From Magallana gigas (Eukaryota), in the NCBI RefSeq assembly GCF_963853765.1, contig NC_088859.1, positions 13,578,001-13,642,000 of the forward strand: 64,000 nucleotides of DNA, written 5' to 3'. The notes below the pieces were generated by a model that saw only the letters and a list, made by a program, of their open reading frames with translations, was not told the origin of the DNA and did not search any database. Both the position numbers and the translations under genes were made by a program. This document shows, one piece after another, positions 1-64,000 of this stretch (positions are counted from its first letter, which is position 1; the number at the start of each line of letters is the position of its first letter).

Positions 1-302
1 CGTGATCCAGGTGTGGTGTTTGTTGTCATGCAAGTTCTGAGAATGTCAAGAAACTCGAAAGGCAGCGATGTGTTTTCATACCCTTATTAAAACGTTGGTT
101 GCTTGGTGAAGGCAAAAAAATTAACCTCTACTAAAAATACAAGGACGCATTTATCCACGTACTAGGTTTTACGTGTGTCTAAGTCAATTTGATATTAATC
201 CTGAAATTGAAAAAAATATATACATGCATGATTCAATTTCACATCTTAGTTTGATTTCAATGAAGTTAGGAGTATGCACTTTTCCGATGAAAGAAAGAAT
301 GG

Positions 303-1802
303 TCACTGTAGATACTTGTACACTTTCACATTGTTAGTATTATATTGTGTAACATGAAGACTGTTCTCATCATCCACAAACAAACCAACAGCATCTTCTA
401 TTCCATATTGTCTAGTGAGTAGTTGACACAAGAACTGGCCACCCTCATTCAGAACAAAAACCGTTCTAGTGTAACGATCGCATACCAGGATATGGCCAAG
501 GACATCAGTGCAAATAGCATGTGGACTAAACCTTGACTTGCGCTTTGTGTAGGAAAACCTGTGTTTGCCTGATTTATTTACCACCACTACGGCTCCTCTC
601 GTCCAGTCTGATGTACAGATATCATCGTTAATGTTTTCTGTGATGTTGTGTGGATCAATGTACATACTATTTCGAACGTTGTATCTCCTCTGTATGTTCT
701 GTATTTCTTTCCCTGCCTTGTTGTACCTGGTTACTTTACCCTCATTTGCATGCCTCATCCCCACCAGTATGTCCCCGTTGATGTGGGAGGAGTGTATACT
801 GAGTGGTACCCAGTCGCCTGTTTTAATGAATTCAGTGATTGTAAAATCCGGTGTTATCCTATTGATGACTTTGTTGTCTCCGTCTGTATAAATCATATCC
901 CCGTCTTGTATGGCTGTAATGGACGCTTCCGATGCAAATTTGGCTAGTATTACCACCTGCGTAGTATTAAAAATTGATTCAAGAAGACCTCTATCATCAA
1001 TAATCCAAAGTCTGTCTGGTTTACCTAGTGTTATTTGACGTACACTACCAGCACACATCACTCTGTACTCCCTGACCTTGGTGACAGAAGAAGACAGAGA
1101 CAGTGGTTGTTTCGCATCAGATTTCTCTCTTTCTTGTTTCTTCATTTTCTCTATTGTTTCAAATCTGTAGAGTCAGTCTTCATGGATTTTATTTTTCTGT
1201 ACTCTGGTTTAGCATCAGGAACAATTGCTCTTCCCAGTAGTTTGGCAACATCCTCCTTACTGTATTGACCAGCAGTAATTACTGGAGGGACTGGCTTCGT
1301 GGTCTCTGGAATGGGTCGTACTTTTAAATTGTCATGAGGGGAAAAAATGATTGGATTGTTATGAAGTTTAGAAAAGACCAGGAAGCGATAGAACCCTTTG
1401 ACAAGGTGTCCAAGATAAGAGATGTAATCTTTGTATGTGTTGTCTTGGCTCTGAAGCTCTTCCATTAGTAATTCTTCCATTCTGTTGGCTTGTTCTATAT
1501 TTTCAGACATCACTGTGTCCACCACACTTTTGAAAGTTTCCGCTTCAGCCTTCATGGATTTTCGTATTTTATCCATTGTTGCTTTTATACTTTTGATATC
1601 TTTTAATACATCTCTTTGTATATCTTGAGAAGTTGGGAGAAAATGCTGATTGATTTTATAGATCTCATCATTGCAGAGAATAGATCTCTCTGAATAAAAA
1701 TTCTCTAAATCAATCAGTGAATGTTTTCGATGGTCTTTTAATGCGCATTTGGAACACGGTGGAACTTGACAATCCTCGCACAGAACGTCTATATCTTTAT
1801 TC
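303..1802 (-). pseudogene. 3' portion of intronless TRIM-like gene (second half of B-box2, coiled coil, NHL-like beta-propeller); frameshift near 1146-1153
   Basis: ORF 1151-1882 gives NKDIDVLCEDCQVPPCSKCALKDHRKH (B-box) and then a helical coiled-coil region. ORF 303-1145 has NHL-like repeats (MIYTD, GDILVG, DICTSD, AICTDVLGHILVCD). The two ORFs are in different frames (TAG-AGAAA-ATG). The 5' part of the gene lies beyond the DIRS insertion. Confidence 0.88.
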
Positions 1803-2015
1803 ATGTATTTATTAAAGGTATGATGACACGTGTGTCTATCGAACACGTGTTTTTGTTTATTTATATTTATACCGGAAACCAAATTTGATTGGTTTCTATA
1901 ATAAGTATTTCACCTGTTATACAGGTATTTAAATTAGAGAGGCGCGACTTCTCGTGTTAAGTGAATAAAGAATTTAGCGCCATTCGAAGGCTCTCTCTTC
2001 GTGCAGTTAGACGTG
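1803..2015 (+). repeat. Split direct repeat A1 (213 bp; partner A2 at 6422-6634)
   Basis: Direct comparison by eye shows 2 substitutions (1882 A vs 6501 G; 1946 G vs 6565 A). Confidence 0.95.
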
Positions 2016-2032
2016 TTTTGGTTAGCTTCCTC

Positions 2033-2780
2033 ATGGCAGATAAAAGCGACGAAGAGATGCTCGAAGAAGTTATCATAACCCCAGGAGAAACTACAAACAA
2101 TTCTTTCGCTTTGACTGATGCCGTGAAACTGCTGACATCAACAATAAATTCTCAATTTCAACAGTTAGCTGAAAAATTACAGGAAGACAGCACAAACTCT
2201 GCACAGTTGCTCAAGAAAAAGCTGAAAGATAACATCGCCGGAAAGCTCAAGTTCGAAGGTAACAGAGTGCAATACATATTCAACGAAGAGTGTATTGAAG
2301 AACTTGATAAGTTAAAAGATTTGTCTTCCAACGATAAAGATACTGTTAAACGTTTGAGAGAGAAAATTAACACAAGACAAAAGCATATAAGAATTGCAGA
2401 TGGGTCACCAGCTGGGTGGAAAACGGTACAGGAGTACCAACTCAACGATGTGGCTGAAAACTCGGACGACGAGAAACGAATCCGCAGTGCAGAAAACAGG
2501 GCGCTCAAACAGACGAAACGGGAAGAAGTCCCGGTTCTCTCCTTATCTCAAACCTGCACAAACAGCTGCGGCTGGTTCTCCTGCTCAGCTGCCTTCTTAT
2601 GGTCTGCAACAGCAGAACAACGTCCTACAGACAGCAAACCCATTCCTTCAGCCCTTTCGTGCAGCTAGCAGGCGCACACCGCAACCAAGTGACGTCTGCT
2701 ACAAATGTTTCCAAACGGGACACTGGAAATCAAGATGCCCCTCTCAGTTCGGCAGCACTGCGCCCTCCTCCTCAAAATGA
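2033..2780 (+). CDS. Gag-like ORF1 with C-terminal CCHC zinc knuckle, broken by a +1 frameshift near 2519-2523
   Basis: MADKSDEE... reads to AENRALKQTKR. The +1 frame continues KKSRFSPY...CYKCFQTGHWKSRC (CX2CX4HX4C) to the stop at 2780. Confidence 0.85.
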
Positions 2781-4800
2781 AGTTGATGATAAGTATTTAC
2801 TCAGTTTTGACATGTTTGATCAATGTAATGATAATGATATCTTAATGAAAGAACATATTCAATTTTTTGATGAAATGAATTTTAGTGGTTCAGAAACCAA
2901 TCAAGGAATAAAGAAAAGCTTGTCAAAGAATTTTAATTTCTGGAAAAGAATAGGTACTTATGATCAAATCTTGCGTATTATTGAGCACGGGTATCATATC
3001 AATTTTGAACAAAATCCCCCCAAGATATTTCTAAAGAATAACAAGTCCGCTGAATCTAATTCTGATTTTGTTTCAGATAGCATTGGTGAATTGCTGGAAT
3101 CAGGTTGCGTTGTACAGGTTCCGTTCAAGCCTTTTGTTGTCAGTCCTTTGAGTGTAGCTGAGAACAGGGAAAAGAAGCGTCTAATTTTAGATCCAAGTGT
3201 TTTAAACAACTATATAAAGAAAGAAAAGATTAAATTTGAAGATTACAAAACGGCTTTACAATATTTCAATAAAAATTGTTTTTTAGTTAAGTTCGATTTG
3301 AAATCCGGATATCATCACATTGATATTAGCAAAGAATGCCAAACATTTTTAGGTTTTCAATGGAAAGAAAAATATTATTGTTTTACGGTACTACCTTTTG
3401 GTCTATCGAGCGCACCATTTGTATTTACTAAGTGTCTTAGATCTATGGTTAGATACTGGAGAGCATGTAACATCAGAATTGTTCTGTATTTAGACGATGG
3501 TTTAGTTATGGCTCAGACGTTTGAGGAATGTCAAAGTATTTCAGATTTCATACAAAAATCCCTGGAACAGGCCGGTTTATTTATTAACCATAAGAAATCT
3601 GTTTTCAGTCCAGTGCAAGAAATTGAATGGCTTGGCATAATTTGGAATTCTATAGAATTTAATATTTCCATTCCAGAAAGAAGAATAAAAGATGTGGAAG
3701 AGACATTATCTAGATTTATCGATATGTTACCTCATGTTTCAGCAAGATGTCTGGCAAAGGTTGCAGGAAAGACCATGTCTTTACATTCTGTTTTAGGAAA
3801 CATATGCAGATTAATGACCAGATTTTCTTACATGGAGATTGTTTTAAGGAAATCTTGGGATTCAAGACTTAATCTCAAATTTCAGGAAAAGACAATTAGA
3901 GAATTGCGATTTTGGTTACAAAACGTACGTAATTATAACATTAGAAAGCTTGCAGATACTGGTCCAGAATGTATTATTGTTTATTCAGATGCTAGTAACG
4001 TTGCAGCGGCGGCCTGCACGGTTGGGGTAGACGAATCGAAATTTCACCTGATGTGGAACGAACAAGAAGCGCAAAAGAGTTCCACCTGGCGGGAAATGAG
4101 AGCAATTGAACAGGCTTTGTTTTCATTTAAAAATAATTTAAGCTGCAAGTCTGTCAAATGGTTTACAGATAATCAAAATTGTGTCAAAATATTCGAATCA
4201 GGTAGCATGAAATTAGAACTTCAAAAATTGGCATTAAGCATTTTTGAATTCTGTAAACGACATAACATCTCAGTCAATATTCAATGGATTCCAAGGGAAG
4301 ATAATGAAAAGGCTGATTATCTTAGTAAATTGATAGACTATGATGATTGGGGTGTGTCTGTAGATTTTTTTCAGTTTATTGATTCAAAATGGGGTCCACA
4401 TACCGTCGACAGATTTGCAAATGCAAATAATAAAAAGTTACAAAGATTTAATTCTGTTTTTTGGAATCCTGGCACAGAGGCTGTGAATTGTTTCACACAA
4501 GATTGGAGAAATGAAAATAATTGGCTTGTGCCACCAGTTTCTTTAGTTATTAAAACTATTAAATATGTAATTAATTGCAATGCTAAAGGGACTTTGATTG
4601 TCCCAAAATGGGTTTCAGCGCCTTATTGGCCCTATGTGTTCAAAGATAACTTGAAAACGTTTGTTTACGTATCAGATGTACTCGAGTTTGAAGACAGTAC
4701 AAAGATTTTTATTCAAGGAATGAATAAAAATTCCATATTTGGTTCTGAAAGATTTTATTCATCAGTATTAGCTATTCGGCTGGACGCTACAAAAATGTGA
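2599..4800 (+). CDS. Pol: reverse transcriptase, RNase H and C-terminal DIRS-type methyltransferase-like (MT) domain, intact 733-aa ORF
   Basis: RT motifs KFDLKSGYHHI, LPFGLSSAP, LYLDDG. RNase H motifs YSDAS, STWRE, FTDNQ. MT-like segment WGPHTVDRFAN...NNWLVPP...IVPKWVSAPYWP. Confidence 0.93.
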   Translation: MVCNSRTTSYRQQTHSFSPFVQLAGAHRNQVTSATNVSKRDTGNQDAPLSSAALRPPPQNEVDDKYLLSFDMFDQCNDNDILMKEHIQFFDEMNFSGSETNQGIKKSLSKNFNFWKRIGTYDQILRIIEHGYHINFEQNPPKIFLKNNKSAESNSDFVSDSIGELLESGCVVQVPFKPFVVSPLSVAENREKKRLILDPSVLNNYIKKEKIKFEDYKTALQYFNKNCFLVKFDLKSGYHHIDISKECQTFLGFQWKEKYYCFTVLPFGLSSAPFVFTKCLRSMVRYWRACNIRIVLYLDDGLVMAQTFEECQSISDFIQKSLEQAGLFINHKKSVFSPVQEIEWLGIIWNSIEFNISIPERRIKDVEETLSRFIDMLPHVSARCLAKVAGKTMSLHSVLGNICRLMTRFSYMEIVLRKSWDSRLNLKFQEKTIRELRFWLQNVRNYNIRKLADTGPECIIVYSDASNVAAAACTVGVDESKFHLMWNEQEAQKSSTWREMRAIEQALFSFKNNLSCKSVKWFTDNQNCVKIFESGSMKLELQKLALSIFEFCKRHNISVNIQWIPREDNEKADYLSKLIDYDDWGVSVDFFQFIDSKWGPHTVDRFANANNKKLQRFNSVFWNPGTEAVNCFTQDWRNENNWLVPPVSLVIKTIKYVINCNAKGTLIVPKWVSAPYWPYVFKDNLKTFVYVSDVLEFEDSTKIFIQGMNKNSIFGSERFYSSVLAIRLDATKM

Positions 4801-4845
4801 CTGATTTGATTGTTTTATATTTCAGAGGTGTGTACTGCAGTGAAA

Positions 4846-5200
4846 GGTCCTGGTACACTAGATATATTATTGATAAGGTCCTGGTACGGAGGTACTGCAG
4901 ACGATCGAATTTTTTAAAAACTGCTATTTAATGTTACGGTCCTGGTACTATGGTACTTCAGACGACAATAGTGTTTATATACTTTATACATGTGTATGTT
5001 AGATTCCTTGTGACGGCGTATTTATTGAATGGACCTGATACGATGGTACTCCAGACGATATTAAAATAAAATTATTGGTTAAAATTGATAAAGGTCCTGG
5101 TACGAAAGTATTGCAGATGATTTGGTAAAATTAAATATATTAATTAACGATTTGTTTTATTTTACAGAAAGTAAGAATCATCTGATAAGATGTTCCTGGT
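4846..5200 (+). repeat. Array of 28-bp GC-rich repeats (GGTCCTGGTAC-N4-GTAC-NN-CAGACGA) separated by unique AT-rich spacers
   Basis: Full copies at 4877-4904, 4938-4965, 5031-5058 and 5093-5120. Half or degenerate copies at 4846-4856, ~5002-5020 and ~5191-5202. Spacers between full copies are 33, 65 and 34 bp. Confidence 0.9.
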
Positions 5201-5284
5201 ATATATAATGATTTTGCATACTTAGACTTGATGTTTTTAGATATACATATTCATGTATATGTATTCATTTTATACGATTTGCAG

Positions 5285-6306
5285 ATATATTTTCGGTGGG
5301 GAGGTGGAGTAATCTATTTTCCAGAATACAAGACCCAAAGCTCCAAGAGTTGGCCGAACTCCTACCATCGTATTGTCTTAAAGCAAGGGCCGAAAATACA
5401 ACCAAAAAATACAGGTACACATTTAACAGATTTTCTAAGTGGTGCAAGACTTTTGAACCTCATGTCAAAAATCTACCAACAACAGATGTGAATGTATCTC
5501 TCTATCTGATTTACATTGCGAAAACTTTTAAATCTGCTCCCAAAATAGAAGAGGCTGTTCATGCTATAGCTTGGGCACATAAACTGGCAGGTTTTTCAAA
5601 CCCATGTGACTCAACTTTGGTGAAGTTCACAAAGGAAGGTTGTTTACGTGATACCAGTCAACCCGTTACAAAAAAGGACCCTATAACACCAGAAATTCTG
5701 TCTTCGATCGTGTCTTTATTGGGAGGAAAGCAAGCATCGCTTTTCGATTTACGTACTTGTTCCATTTTTTTGTTGGGTTATGCAGGGTTTCTGCGTTTTT
5801 CTGAAATTGTCAATATTCAAAGATCTCATGTAACTTTTCATGAATCACATTTGAAATTATTTGTTCCCAAAAGCAAAACTGATGTTCAAAACAAGGGTAG
5901 TTGTGTATATATTTCACGCACAAGTTCTCAAAACTGTCCTGTGAACCTACTAGAGAGGTATTTGAATTTGTCTGGTATAGAAGAAAATTCAGATGAATAT
6001 ATTTTCAGACAACTGTCTTATAGCAAGAAATTCAATATTTATAGACTCAAGAAATGTAAGGCACCACTGTCATATACCAGAGTTAGAGAAATTGTTTTGT
6101 CTACATTAAATACTTTGGGTTTAGACTAAAAAAAGTTTGGTGTGCATAGTCTGCGGTCGGGTGGGGCCACGGCTGCCGCAACTTCAGGAGTGAGTGATAG
6201 ACTCTTTAAAAAGCACGGGCGGTGGAAAAGTGATAATGCTAAAGACGGCTACGTTCACGAAAATTTAAAAAGTAAACTTTCTGTTTCCAAAAATCTTGGT
6301 ATATAA
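5285..6306 (+). pseudogene. Tyrosine recombinase (YR) of the DIRS element; no ATG of its own; in-frame TAA at 6127-6129
   Basis: Contains FLRFSEI (catalytic R) and KSKTD (K). After the TAA the same frame continues KKFGVHSLRSGG...KHGRWKSDNAKDGY (H-x-x-R, H/W, Y) to TAA 6304-6306. Confidence 0.92.
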
Positions 6307-6324
6307 CTCTTTCTTTATTTGTCG

Positions 6325-6421
6325 AAACTGCACTCTTGAGAGCGCTTCTGTACCTACACACTGTGTTTATTTATTTTATAAATTATTTATGTTCGGTTGA
6401 GTGTAACGAATTAGAACATAA
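6325..6421 (+). repeat. Split direct repeat B1 (97 bp; partner B2 at 6754-6850)
   Basis: B1 and B2 are identical by eye. B1 directly abuts A2. Confidence 0.95.
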
Positions 6422-6850
6422 ATGTATTTATTAAAGGTATGATGACACGTGTGTCTATCGAACACGTGTTTTTGTTTATTTATATTTATACCGGAAACCA
6501 GATTTGATTGGTTTCTATAATAAGTATTTCACCTGTTATACAGGTATTTAAATTAGAGAGGCGCAACTTCTCGTGTTAAGTGAATAAAGAATTTAGCGCC
6601 ATTCGAAGGCTCTCTCTTCGTGCAGTTAGACGTGGCCCCCACCCACCCACCCTACTTGTTTTCGTGTATCATTTTATTGTAATTAACAATTTTTCTCATT
6701 ATTGTAGAGAACTGAGGAGAACTGAAGATATTTGTCTATAACTTTATTCGAATAAACTGCACTCTTGAGAGCGCTTCTGTACCTACACACTGTGTTTATT
6801 TATTTTATAAATTATTTATGTTCGGTTGAGTGTAACGAATTAGAACATAA

Positions 6851-7101
6851 GGGTGATCACTGCACATCTCCTTAGGAAGTTGTCGTTTTCGTTGTCGGTA
6901 AAGAACAACTTCATGGTTCTTGGTTTTTGGACTCTTCTGATGTTCGTCCCTGCATTGTTCACACATTGGTTGGTGACAAGGATTGCAGTAAAATTGGGCA
7001 TTCCTTTCACAGTCTTCATTGCCACACTCCAAATAGTGCTGCGCTATGACTGGTAACCCTTCGACACTATCAGCTGGAGCTAATGGTTCGGATAACACCA
7101 T
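6851..7101 (-). pseudogene. 5' portion of the DIRS-interrupted TRIM-like gene (B-box1 and start of B-box2)
   Basis: ttcag|ATG at 7101. Reads CGNEDCERNAQFYCNPCHQPMCEQCRDEH...MCSDHP, then runs into repeat B2. Confidence 0.9.
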
Positions 7102-8284
7102 CTGAAATTGTTATTTTGATTGTTGCATGCATATTTCAAAATATTGAAAATAATTTAATTCTATATTGAGAATTCACAATTCTTAACGTATATAAATAAA
7201 TACATACCGGGGCATTAGAGTGAAAGTAAACATTTTATTTTTAATTTTTCTGGTAAAACTGCTATTAATAAACATTTAAAAAGAAATGATTTGTGATACT
7301 TTCATATATTCAATAGGTGTCATAACTATACATACATTATAAAATAATTCGCTCTGGCTCAATCGGCGAAACAACACGCCCTGTCTAATGTGAATGTGTT
7401 CTAAATGTTATCTTCAATTTTGTTATCGCCGCTGCGTCTAGTGAACTGTAAAGGGTCCATTGGTCCTTAATAATATATCTACTATAAAAAAATAGTGCAT
7501 GTATTCGCATAAGTCAATTTTCACTAAATTCCGTTCGTCTCTTTTATATTACGTTAAAGTTTATTTTGAATTTAAGTTAATTATTGGGGGGTTTTTTCAG
7601 GCTTAATTATTAAAGACGTTAATGGTTTTATCTTTGATAAATATTTATTTAAGCGTGTCACGTGCGTTTATATAATTTACTAGAAGCATTGTATGAATTA
7701 ACTGTGTCGTGAAAGATTGTCACGTTTTGCTTTACTTTTATACATATGGGGATTATCAGTTTAATGCCCAACTATATGGATGTTTTAAGTTTCATCGTCT
7801 TTGAAAATTTTCACACTCACTTTCACCACACAATTCATTACTTTCGTTTTGAAAATAAAACTGGCGTATTGGAAAACTGGGGGTGATCAGTGACACAACG
7901 TGTGTTATGAACATTCAAACCACTTGTGGAAAACGAAATGATAGTTTCTCATTTAGAAAATATAGAGAGATGCAATGTGGGGCCTTAACATTATAGAGGC
8001 AACAAAACACTGTGGCCATCATGCAGTTCTTTGAAAATTCAGCTTTGTAGATATACATAAAGAATAAGAATCGATTCCAAAATAAAGGTTAGTTGATATT
8101 TCATGCATTATTTGATATGCACGTCAATATCTAACCGGTAGATACTGATCAAGAAAAGGATGAGAAGGTTTCCCAAACCCTCTTCTTTTCTATGGCGATT
8201 GTTTTCTTCCGAAAGGGGAAATGGCGATCTGTGCTGCAACGCAAAATGATATTAAAAATTGATACAAAATGTAATAAATTCCAA

Positions 8285-8657
8285 TTATTATACTTTCATA
8301 TTGAATACTGAAATCTGATTGGTTTAGACGCAGTTAATAATTGTTCTATTACCCTCAGCGTTAGCAACACACTTGGTAACGGGTAACCCAACGAATTGTT
8401 ACCTGCGCGTAAACTATGCGTGTACGGTTCGTCGTAGAATTCACGTCATTCCTATATAAAATCAGTAAAGTTTTCTTTGAAATTAAGACATTTAGTATAA
8501 TAAAATAAATTTTGCCTGTTTAGAGGGTAACAGTTGAAATTGAAACCCCTCGAATACCATTGTCAACCTCCAATTCGCGTCGGTTGACAATGGTTTTCTC
8601 GGGGTGTCAATTTCAACTGTTACCCTCCCAATATTGCAAACAGGCACTATTTATATA
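8285..8657. mobile_element. Non-autonomous long-hairpin element, copy 1 (more diverged)
   Basis: Colinear with 15124-15496 over ~370 bp and carries the same 3' long imperfect palindrome. Confidence 0.8.
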
Positions 8658-8960
8658 CTAATACATTTTGTATTATCACATGTACATTGTGATTCTGTAT
8701 CTTCGCCAAATGTAACAACACGATATGAAAAAAAGGTAATTTTTTCATAAACTATATTTGTGATATTGAATATGCAGGATGTATTGTGCCTTTCTATGCG
8801 AAAGAAAATTAAAAGTAACATTGTACCAATTTGTCATTAAAAACGTTCACTGTAATTATGAATGCATTTTTAAATATATTTCCTAGAGGGAATAGTGAAA
8901 AAGAATCGACATTTTAAAACTCAGTAAAGCAAGATCTGAAAATATAAATAAGAGTCATCG

Positions 8961-23603: not shown

Positions 23604-23676
23604 GAACATACACTATCAGTAGAACATACACTATCAGTAGAACATACACTATCAGTAGAACATACACTATCAGTAG
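23604..23676. repeat. 18-bp minisatellite x4 (GAACATACACTATCAGTA)
   Basis: Four perfect tandem copies. Confidence 0.95.
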
Positions 23677-34145: not shown

Positions 34146-34247
34146 CATAACACGCTGTTCAGCTAGCACTACTTCACATTACACGCTGTTCAGCTAGCAC
34201 TACTTCACATAACACGCTGTTCAGCTAGCACTAATTCACATAACGCG
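34146..34247. repeat. 31-bp tandem repeat x3 plus partial copy, followed by a CpG-rich degenerate repeat region to ~34490
   Basis: Unit CATAACACGCTGTTCAGCTAGCACTACTTCA. Inverted motif CAATACAACTTCACTT (34257) pairs with AAGTGAAGTTGCATTG (~34474-34489). Confidence 0.85.
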
Positions 34248-34602
34248 CTATCGCGCCAATACAACTTCACTTAGACCTTGCACTCGCGATAACACATTCT
34301 ACGCTGAACGTAGCTTATAAATACAACTTGGCATAACGAGTTCGCACAACCGCATACAATATAGCAATAGCGATAGTCCTTGCGCTTTGCAATAGCGCAA
34401 CGGCGTGTGGCATGAAGTTGGTTAGCGGGACGGTGTATTGTAGTGTAAGTTTTTGTGCGCGCTACGACGTTAAAAGTGAAGTTGCATTGCGCATGAAAGC
34501 ATGTGGGAGGGGGGTTTAATGCAGCGGTGTTGTCTTGATACAAAGCTATACATGTATATAGTCTGTCTAAATTATTGTTTGTTTTCATTTGGGCGATTTT
34601 CA

Positions 34603-62391: not shown

Positions 62392-64000
62392 ATGGCTACC
62401 GCTGGAAACAAATCTCTTACCACCAATTCGCCAGGTGACACCTTCCGCTGTCCAGTATGTCTGGAAGAGGTCAGGAATCCAAAGTACCTGTCGTGTCTTC
62501 ATACTTTTTGTGAATCGTGTATTCAAACATATATATCGAGTACTGCAACATGTAATGACACATTGAATACAAAGACGATTAATTGTCCGGTATGTCGAAA
62601 ACGCATTTATGCTCCTAGGAAGGAAATTTCAGATGAAGAATGGGCAACTTCCTTGCCAGAAAATAATCTTATTGTAAGCATGTGGCTGAATACAAAAGAC
62701 ACCGACAAGCAATTGTGCAAGTTCTGCGAACGAAAAGAAAAATATGTTCCTGCTAAATATTGGTGTAAACCATGCATGGCAATCATCTGCGACGAATGTA
62801 AGGCTTTGCAAGAATTTGTACCAATTCTTAAAAACCATAAGATTGTTAACATAGATGATACTATTGAAGATTGTGGAAAAAAGGTTAAGATTGAAGAGCT
62901 GTGTCCAGAACGCGAAGGAAAGACGATTGATGCATTTTGCCAAATACATCAGAAATTATATTGTTGTATTTGCCTTGCTAAACATCACAGATCGTGTCAG
63001 CTGGTAGAAATTTTAGCAGACATGGCAGTGGAAACAGGACAAACCGATGTTCAAAATATTTTAGCATAATTTTCTGACTTGCAGAAATGTATTGAGAATA
63101 TGCAGCTGGAAAATCAGACCAAATTTGCCCTTCTCAATTCAAAGAAACAAGAAATTTGCGTTAGCACTGAAAATGCCATTCAAGAGATGAAGTAATTTGA
63201 TTGTCAATGCATTTGCGGCATGGATCAAACGATTTGAACAGACTCATGTAGATTCTGTCGTAAACTTAGAAGTTGCATGTAATGAATTATAACAGCTTCC
63301 GACCACAGTACTTGAAACCAAATTTCTTTTGCAATTATTGCTAGAGAAAGGATCCCCTAAACAACTAATTATCACAAAACAAAATCAACTGGCGCGAATT
63401 TTTGACCATATTTCTCGTTTGAAACATCAGGATATTTGGAATTTTCCTGATGTGAACACACAGCCAGACACTAATTTCCAGAAACAACTTTTGAACCAGG
63501 AGAAGTTTGAAGATGTAAAGTTTTCAAAAACTCCCTCTGAAATGGTTGAGACTCTTCTACAATCTGTCTCGAAAGCTACCTGCAGCAATTTCTTGAGAAG
63601 GAAACATGAAACGTCTGTGAAGGACTGGATTGAAGTCACCTTCAAATTAGTATCCCAGATAACCAATTAGCCAGAGAGGTCTTATTATGGTTTGTTCGTT
63701 CATGACACAAGCATCATTTTGAGCTTTATGAAACACCCTTCACTCAAGATTTTCGATATTAGCGAACCTGTCGGGAAATGTATTCACACTAAAAAATGCC
63801 CGAGCTTACCGTACGGTATGTGCCACTCCAGGGTGAACGAGAGCTTGAATGAGGTCTACGTGTCTTTCTAAAACTTTGTCATCCTGTATTTGATTGATAT
63901 TGGAGACAAAGTTACATTTACAAAACTCCAAAAAAAATTCTTTGAAACAACCCATGCAGGCAATTTCATGTGGACTGACGACCGTATTCGCAGCAAATGA
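62392..64000 (+). pseudogene. RING/B-box/B-box/coiled-coil TRIM-like pseudogene, truncated by the window end
   Basis: C3HC4 RING CPVC...CLHTFCESC...CPVCR and two B-boxes. In-frame stops at 63067-63069 and 63193-63195, then a frame change (ORF 63329-63670) and further stops. Confidence 0.85.

Follow-up and report, generated by a model that had tools for sequence, protein, structure and literature searches.

The window (the whole 64-kb stretch of Magallana gigas DNA that was analysed) contains a retrotransposon with gag, pol and tyrosine-recombinase (YR) genes, the parts of which are listed in Table 1. The pol product matched the Pfam families RVT_1 (3.6e-24), RVT_3 and RT_RNaseH, and also Dam (5.7e-06, 26.6 bits), the last slightly below the curated Pfam cut-off of 28.1. 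The repeats of the element follow the order A1 ... B1A2 ... B2, with the internal pair located 3ʹ of YR; the Pat1-like, or echinoderm-form, repeat layout has been defined earlier (PMC4157794). Judging from the RT/RNase H and Dam-like domains, the YR, the repeat layout and the Gag zinc finger, all of them read from sequence, the element is an echinoderm-form Pat1-like member of the PAT group, DIRS order. The copy in the window is dead: its gag is frameshifted between ~2513 and 2586, relative to the intact gag of the family copy L093, and its YR, for which the YR protein search returned homologues up to E = 1e-182, carries a premature stop at 6127-6129. The CCHC zinc knuckle of Gag (CX2CX4HX4C, nt 2697) is in frame in L093 and out of frame in the window. 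Among the related loci, L005 was found to hold two complete element copies head to tail (357-4571 and 5419-9633, period 5062 nt), and in L093 (3659-4010) B1 is joined straight to A and gag; both arrangements resemble a tandem or circle junction.

Several other features were noticed in the window. An adjacent ORF pair at 35487-38911, encoding an APE-type endonuclease and a reverse transcriptase, indicates a LINE-like retrotransposon, and a 46-nt inverted repeat at 8523-8627 (91% complementary, 13-nt gap) could be a MITE-like or hairpin element. TRIM-like pieces at 303-1882 (-), 62392-63069 (+) and 49581-50165 (-) were listed together with a trefoil-domain ORF; the B-box and NHL-like ORFs abut the A1 end of the element, and a RING ORF lies near the end of the window. 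Short tandem repeats are present at 34146-34270, 44051-44238, 23604-23676 and 10209-10315 (periods of 31/62, 64 and 18 nt, and a three-copy 25-nt repeat).

Table 1. Positions of the element, its genes and repeats, the stem-loop units, the gene models and the hairpin arrays of distant families. Positions refer to the window unless a locus is named.
Feature	Position	Strand	Remarks
Whole element	~1803-6850	+	Pat1-like, DIRS order, Magallana gigas
Terminal repeat A1 (split direct repeats)	1803..2015	+	99% identity to A2 6422-6634
gag	2033..2760	+	AUG at 2033; broken in window copy
pol ORF	2599..4800	+	reverse transcriptase, RNase H, Dam-like methyltransferase domain (Pfam)
3ʹ half-unit then 5ʹ half-unit (GTACTGCAG ... 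GGTCCTGGTAC)	4826..4860	+	permuted hairpin possible; fold z = -0.02
Stem-loop unit 1	4871..4909	+	core 4877-4904; loop GGAG; covariance model 35.9 bits
Stem-loop unit 2	4932..4970	+	core 4938-4965; loop UAUG; 36.4 bits
Weak part-copy	5002..5016	+	positional counterpart in L004
Stem-loop unit 3	5025..5063	+	core 5031-5058; GGACC/GAUAC variant; 33.7 bits
Stem-loop unit 4	5087..5125	+	core 5093-5120; loop GAAA; 37.4 bits
Part-copy (GTTCCTGGTAT)	5191..5203	+	9/11 match to repeat start
Pyrimidine-rich tract ending CAG	5262..5284	+	predicted 3ʹ splice site of YR mRNA, phase 1
Tyrosine-recombinase (YR) ORF	5285..6306	+	without AUG; Pfam Phage_integrase
Internal repeat B1	6300..6421	+	92% identity to B2 6729-6850
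Internal repeat A2	6422..6634	+	99% identity to A1
Terminal repeat B2	6729..6850	+	92% identity to B1
XP_065922975.1, exons	2599-2788 and 5276-6129 (L091 3001-6531)		'integrase/recombinase xerD homolog'
Element locus with Mytilus splice model	L092 3001-7211		
Different array in a distant family	L042 997-1190		
Different array in a distant family	L045 2986-3165		
Different array in a distant family	L013 1382-1450		
Different array in a distant family	L014 2856-2990		
Different array in a distant family	L061 3022-3115		
Different array in a distant family	L026 5816-5855		
Different array in a distant family	L034 2908-3060		
Different array in a distant family	L063 3411-3700		

The repeat array between pol and YR

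A 496-nt gap separates pol from the YR ORF, and the stretch with the array is the only sizeable non-coding stretch inside the element. The first-pass annotation, made from the letters of the window, had described in this place four 28-bp repeats with accompanying half copies, and all four units are flanked by the pol stop and the YR ORF. When the 28-nt pattern GGTCCTGGTAC-NNN-GGTACTGCAGACGA was searched on both strands of the 64 kb, we obtained exactly four matches, all on the + strand, with 0, 1, 3 and 3 mismatches at 4877, 4938, 5031 and 5093, respectively; 100 shuffles searched with the same pattern gave zero matches. The coordinates, the start-to-start distances (61, 93 and 62 nt), the spacers (33, 65 and 34 nt) and the loops (GGAG, TATG, GATG and GAAA) were reproduced as annotated, and so was the count of eight GTAC sites in 4832-5103. 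GTAC is over-represented across the whole 64 kb (210 sites vs 152 +/- 12 in shuffles), and the array is not special in this respect. The half copies fared unevenly: the first 11 nt of the repeat are found again, exact, at 4846, the copy at ~5191 is recognizable at nine of 11 positions, and the one at ~5002 is weak but matched in L004.

The half-unit pair at 4826..4860 gave no match to the full covariance model described below, and this model, run with filters off on the window's element, found nothing beyond the four units. The T at 4958, in the UG bulge of unit 2, is private to the window copy. The proposed higher-order period of ~155 bp was borne out by the comparison of block 4840-4995 with block 4996-5150, in which the repeat cores were 72% identical and the sequence outside the cores 39%. 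Tandem Repeats Finder did not call the array.

Two readings of the repeats were rejected at this stage of the argument. The likeness to CRISPR, pointed out earlier, holds for the geometry but not for the identity: the sequence belongs to an oyster chromosome (OY970751.1, to which it is identical over 9129 nt), the neighbours of the array are gag, pol and tyrosine recombinase, the repeats differ by 0-3 mismatches, and the spacers, of unequal length, are fixed family sequence common to 12 assemblies of the family. A coding repeat (GPGT-x-VLQT-I/T, with many synonymous-looking changes) was rejected because the copies do not share a frame (4877 and 5093 are in one, 4938 and 5031 in another) and because the loop, at 4, 6 and up to 11 nt, varies in length by non-multiples of 3 (by 2 nt in L004 and by more in other relatives).

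The same unit in related elements

Relatives were gathered by the YR protein search, and their contigs were then fetched. The array is not private to the window copy, as it is present in 11 further assemblies of the family; over the 12 assemblies, 4 of 551 columns were variable, the copy number did not change and the spacers were fixed. Six bivalve families, whose recombinases are 45-65% identical, have 2-7 copies of the unit each, without exception in sense orientation and within the interval from the pol stop to YR. In L004 (YR 65% identical), we found two full units, which align with window units 3 and 4, and two part-copies. Between the window and L004, the units and the splice-site region stand out as conserved islands, and the intervening spacers are barely alignable; together with the block comparison within the window, this agrees with the earlier claim that the core has been preserved while the spacers diverged. 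The stem mismatches reported for copy 3 were also present, but they do not represent decay, since the same GGACC/GAUAC variant, with its two conserved mismatches, occupies the matching position in L004.

The number and period of the units vary among the other families. In the Mytilus family (L005, L006, L011 and L092; YR ~51-56%), 6-7 units recur every ~49 nt; there are four units in L009 and two in L010, and in L040 (YR 45%) five units recur every 62 nt. The array starts at the pol stop codon or up to ~85 nt after it. More distant families have different hairpin arrays in the same place between pol and YR (Table 1), some of them with compensatory changes; they include six hairpins with G(G/A)AU loops in L042, ACUG loops in L013, L014 and L061, UCGGU loops in L026, L031, L034 and L055, and a five-fold 46-nt repeat.

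Pairing, covariation and the folding strand

Read from 5ʹ to 3ʹ, the unit consists of a 3-bp helix GYC/GRY, a 2-nt 3ʹ bulge, a 3-bp helix CUR/YAG and a UG 3ʹ bulge, beyond which lies an apical helix of 4-9 bp, free in sequence, closed by a loop of 3-11 nt. GGYCCUR is conserved on the 5ʹ side, and on the 3ʹ side UG-YAG, separated by two free nucleotides from GRY. The core is thus foldable, as had been claimed, but the register proposed for it, in which GTC(C)TG pairs with CAGAC and leaves a 5ʹ bulge, fails in L005 and L010 and was rejected; the register with 3ʹ bulges works in both. The MFE folds of units from L040, L092, L005 and L010 recovered both 2-nt bulges, with the basal helix placed under a 3x3 internal loop in L040, L092 and L010, and the fold of the L040 unit had a z of -2.6. 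In the window, single units folded no better than shuffled sequence (z of -0.2 to -0.95 on either strand) and the whole spacer equalled its shuffles (z = -0.02); thermodynamic significance of the window units and spacer was therefore dropped as an argument. A long-range partner for the conserved 5ʹ flank was dropped as well, because the complementary motif was not enriched and was absent from the + strand within the element.

A covariance model was built from a seed alignment of 18 units. In a search of 396 kb on both strands it gave 42 matches, all on the sense strand and all in pol-YR spacers; among them were loci outside the training set (L040, L011, L006 and L092), and none lay elsewhere in the 64-kb window. 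In the alignment of the 26 distinct matches (A4), 91.4% of 304 cells paired, in comparison to 14-50% with partners slid, and in the seed 87% of cells paired, in comparison to 15-48%. Changes on both sides were seen at 6 of the 12 pairs in each alignment, in 34 cells of the seed and 60 cells of A4, counts which overstate independence, since the units are paralogues and A4 was fitted to the model. Covariation across families, which the first-pass annotation had named as a check on the pairing, is in this way present. Examples are CUG/CAG changing to CUA/UAG and GUC/GAC to GCC/GGC, and the apical helices are paired as GUAC/GUAC, GUACAC/GUGUAU, GUAUGC/GCAUAU, GUGUGU/ACACAC and GUAUCAUAU/AUAUGAUAU.

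G-U and U-G combinations outnumbered A-C and C-A by 30 to 8. This indicates that the + strand is the one that folds, and therefore that the folding molecule is RNA, rather than a double-stranded site or antisense cDNA. Rfam gave no match at the array (E up to 1, window 1-12000) and no match at all in L004, L005, L006, L009 and L040 (E up to 0.1). As far as comparison of sequences goes, the repeats represent a conserved, foldable sense-strand RNA stem-loop, repeated in the pol-YR spacer.

These results bear on the suggestion that the array is a neutral, decaying internal minisatellite, in which the unit would be palindromic by chance and the hairpin would be kept not by selection but by a mutational process such as template switching in quasi-palindromes. 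The non-coding parts of retrotransposons often contain tandem repeats, and the spacings near multiples of 31 nt, the part-copies, the 155-nt higher-order block, the unremarkable folding energies and a copy number of 2 to 7, depending on the family, would all fit such an origin. However, the unit is kept in six families with unalignable spacers, both bulges are kept and not 'corrected', all matches lie on one strand with G-U favoured over A-C, the copy number is constant in the 12 assemblies of the family, and Tandem Repeats Finder saw no array. Because covariation is present, with compensatory changes at six pairs, the neutral reading is largely refuted, and we regard it as improbable. The hypervariable internal tandem repeats of plant LTR-retrotransposons are similar in that they, too, occupy a non-coding region inside a retrotransposon. 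To our knowledge, those repeats vary rapidly and no structural covariation has been reported for them, whereas the oyster array is fixed within the family and its structure is conserved across families.

The units could also act at the level of DNA, either as YR binding or recombination sites (as inverted repeats or as folded single-stranded DNA resembling attC) or as targets of the Dam-like methyltransferase. With its extrahelical bases, the unit forms an imperfect inverted repeat, and the array lies beside the recombinase gene; with the attC sites of integrons it shares the imperfect palindrome, the conservation of structure over sequence and the context of a tyrosine recombinase system. DIRS-1 has been reported to replicate via single-stranded cDNA, and its cDNA intermediate has been described as antisense (PMC7192593). 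On an antisense cDNA, however, the 30 G-U pairs turn into A-C mismatches. In addition, the bulges are one-sided, the apical helix is free in sequence, in contrast to a sequence-specific protein site, and no unit was found in or beside the terminal or internal repeats, the expected places of recombination. On these grounds the phased YR binding sites suggested in the first-pass annotation are disfavoured. An attC-like folded site was rejected, as the units are flanked by GGYCCUR and YAG..GRY instead of the attC outer boxes, and it is the RNA-sense strand that folds, away from the recombination junctions. GTAC as a target of the Dam-like domain turned out to be unsupported: it is not conserved across families, and GTGCAC, GTATGC, GTGTGT, CTAGCT and other paired sequences stand in its place in relatives. 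A target motif is not given in a 2026 preprint on the Dam domains of transposons. A role of the array in DNA form hence seems hardly probable to us.

The recombinase mRNA and the possible role of the array

In addition to the lack of an AUG in the window's YR ORF, the intact recombinases of the family (P0001 and P0074) contain no Met besides the gene-caller's GTG start. In 26 of 35 loci from many families, the conserved N-terminus ([IV]F..G.W) directly follows a pyrimidine tract with YAG in phase 1. For the codon bearing the YA, the amino acid is S, A, T, P, L or I, which places the constraint on the nucleotides and not on the protein, as expected of a 3ʹ splice site. Several loci have a stop codon shortly 5ʹ of the YAG, and no AUG in between.

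The acceptor was predicted from the sequence before the Mytilus RefSeq models that use it were found. The models XP_063405934.1 (Mytilus trossulus) and XP_071169628.1 (M. edulis) begin with the 12 N-terminal residues of gag, followed by D-IFRVGRW. The sole canonical (GT-AG) two-exon solution for L092 has exon 1 at 3001-3037, the donor CCGAAG^GTGAGA (the caret marks the junction) and exon 2 from 6205, with the acceptor TTTTTCAG^AT, to which the first 12 codons of gag plus 1 nt are joined; the modelled intron of 3167 nt comprises the rest of gag, pol and the 6-7 hairpins. A third model (M. galloprovincialis) has the same acceptor and another donor.

For the window locus itself, the RefSeq model XP_065922975.1 runs from the pol AUG and uses an AT-AC junction located 8 nt 5ʹ of the canonical acceptor. 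We regard this junction as doubtful, and the model, which is placed on a dead transposon copy, has the look of an annotation artefact. The window's family, the intact copy L093 included, has no GT at the site that corresponds to the Mytilus donor. A candidate donor in the window lies between 2258 and 2259, at gag codon 76 in the conserved gag EGN motif, where the codon is GGT in the window and L003, and GGC in L005 and L011. A phase-1 GT at the end of pol, also a candidate donor, was present, as read by eye, in L003 and L004 only.

From the acceptor and the gene models we infer that YR is probably made from a spliced subgenomic mRNA, in which the gag AUG and a few gag codons are joined to the acceptor, and that the pol-YR spacer would be the 3ʹ part of the intron of this mRNA. 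If the gene models hold, the array sits in the intron and would for that reason be present only on unspliced genomic RNA. In ALV/RSV, the env mRNA is formed in such a way, by splicing of the gag AUG and six codons to env. The Mytilus models similarly join the gag AUG, 12 codons and 1 nt to an AUG-less ORF, with the differences that the downstream gene is a tyrosine recombinase and that the evidence for the splice comes from gene models and conserved sequence.

Alternatively, the array might drive internal, AUG-independent translation of YR from unspliced RNA, like the intergenic IRES of dicistroviruses, as suggested by the presence of a structured intergenic region directly 5ʹ of an AUG-less ORF. 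However, a single simple hairpin, repeated in 2 to 7 copies, is unlike known intergenic IRES folds, and no match to the Rfam IRES families was obtained. As the missing AUG of YR is explained more simply by the canonical acceptor at the ORF boundary and the spliced gene models, we consider internal initiation to be extremely improbable.

The explanation we favour, tentatively and somewhat short of calling it probable, is that the array is a set of conserved, intronic sense-RNA stem-loops which form a repeated protein-binding platform, putatively a packaging or reverse-transcriptase recognition signal. The YR mRNA would be spliced from the gag start region to the acceptor, so that the array would be removed with the intron and the full-length unspliced RNA would keep it. 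The array would bind a protein, most likely one encoded by the element, with the CCHC-bearing Gag nucleocapsid and nascent Pol as the two candidates. Through this binding, unspliced RNA would be singled out for packaging and reverse transcription, by analogy with retroviral Psi, and use of the nearby acceptor may be restrained by the array as well. An element-encoded partner is favoured because no more than ~85 nt separate the pol stop from the start of the array, and because distant families hold different hairpin arrays, where a fixed host factor would be expected to keep the motif constant. The Gag of the family carries a CCHC knuckle and is a candidate partner; by analogy, a Gag zinc-knuckle packaging signal appears to be the best candidate among the options offered in the first-pass annotation.

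In HIV-1 and MLV, the packaging signal Psi follows directly on the major splice donor in the 5ʹ leader. Like Psi, the oyster array would be a group of clustered short stem-loops which splicing removes and which only genomic RNA retains, and the CCHC zinc-knuckle nucleocapsid, which is the binding partner of Psi, is for the array a candidate one. In contrast to Psi, the donor in the oyster element would be inside gag, with the array ~3 kb downstream and made of repeats of a single hairpin type. LINE reverse transcriptases recognise 3ʹ stem-loops, and hepadnavirus epsilon is comparable. Recognition of a bulged hairpin by the element's own polymerase could apply here too, and the location of the array up to ~85 nt from the pol stop suits binding in cis; the oyster array, however, is internal, not 3ʹ-terminal, and has several copies.

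Some observations count against a packaging or reverse-transcriptase recognition signal. The window units fold no better than shuffles, two mismatches are conserved in unit 3 and its L004 counterpart, and XP_065922975.1 uses the AT-AC junction instead of the canonical acceptor, in a family with no GT at the Mytilus donor position.

Moreover, the evidence from structure and strand fits equally well the control of splicing or nuclear export through host factors by hairpins just 5ʹ of the YR acceptor, which is a serious rival, even if we find it on balance unlikely. In its splicing form, an intronic silencer or a sequestered decoy UGCAG/UGUAG acceptor would keep enough RNA unspliced; in its export form, the hairpins would recruit an export factor for intron-containing RNA. 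The RSV negative regulator of splicing and the suppressor of src splicing are analogues of the former, and the MPMV CTE and RSV DR1 of the latter; DR1, the CTE and the negative regulator of splicing act through host factors. Control of splicing has become a more concrete option because a conserved 3ʹ splice site lies just 3ʹ of the array. The array falls within the last 70-450 nt of the predicted intron, and the 3ʹ strand of each unit ends with U-G-Y-A-G, like the real acceptor UUGCAG^AU. However, the last unit lies anywhere between about 65 and 172 nt from the acceptor, the hairpins of distant families are without YAG, and families taken from a single sample (L003, L009 and L010) have unlike motifs, which is unexpected for a fixed host factor. 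Like DR1, the CTE and the negative regulator of splicing, which keep retroviral RNA unspliced, export it or help to package it, the array is a repeated, structured RNA element; it differs in that the oyster motif changes between families and that no Rfam element, transport element included, matches it in sequence or model.

The preferred reading, a packaging or reverse-transcriptase recognition signal, may extend beyond the window's family. It is possible, although we hold this with less confidence than the proposal for the array itself, that YR elements of the PAT/DIRS kind share a retrovirus-like plan, in which a spliced YR mRNA that takes its start codon from gag is combined with a family-specific intronic stem-loop array for packaging or RT recognition. 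If this is true, the array would be the first cis-acting RNA signal defined for the DIRS order.

Cis-acting stem-loops on retroelement RNA are already known as a kind. The motif, its repetition, its position and its link with the intron of the recombinase mRNA were not found in Rfam or the searched literature, in which no hairpin arrays or recombinase splicing are described for DIRS/PAT elements; older papers of Goodwin and Poulter were outside its scope, and a prior mention is possible. According to a study of DIRS-1 from 2020, the start of reverse transcription is not understood (PMC7192593). The present analysis provides handles on the choice of RNA for reverse transcription and on the expression of the recombinase in DIRS/PAT elements, namely a repeated conserved hairpin at a fixed place, an acceptor before the AUG-less YR gene, and arrays specific to families. 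The stem-loop is a candidate new RNA family, and the array is a practical annotation marker in bivalve genomes, where YR is now labelled as a host 'integrase/recombinase xerD homolog'.
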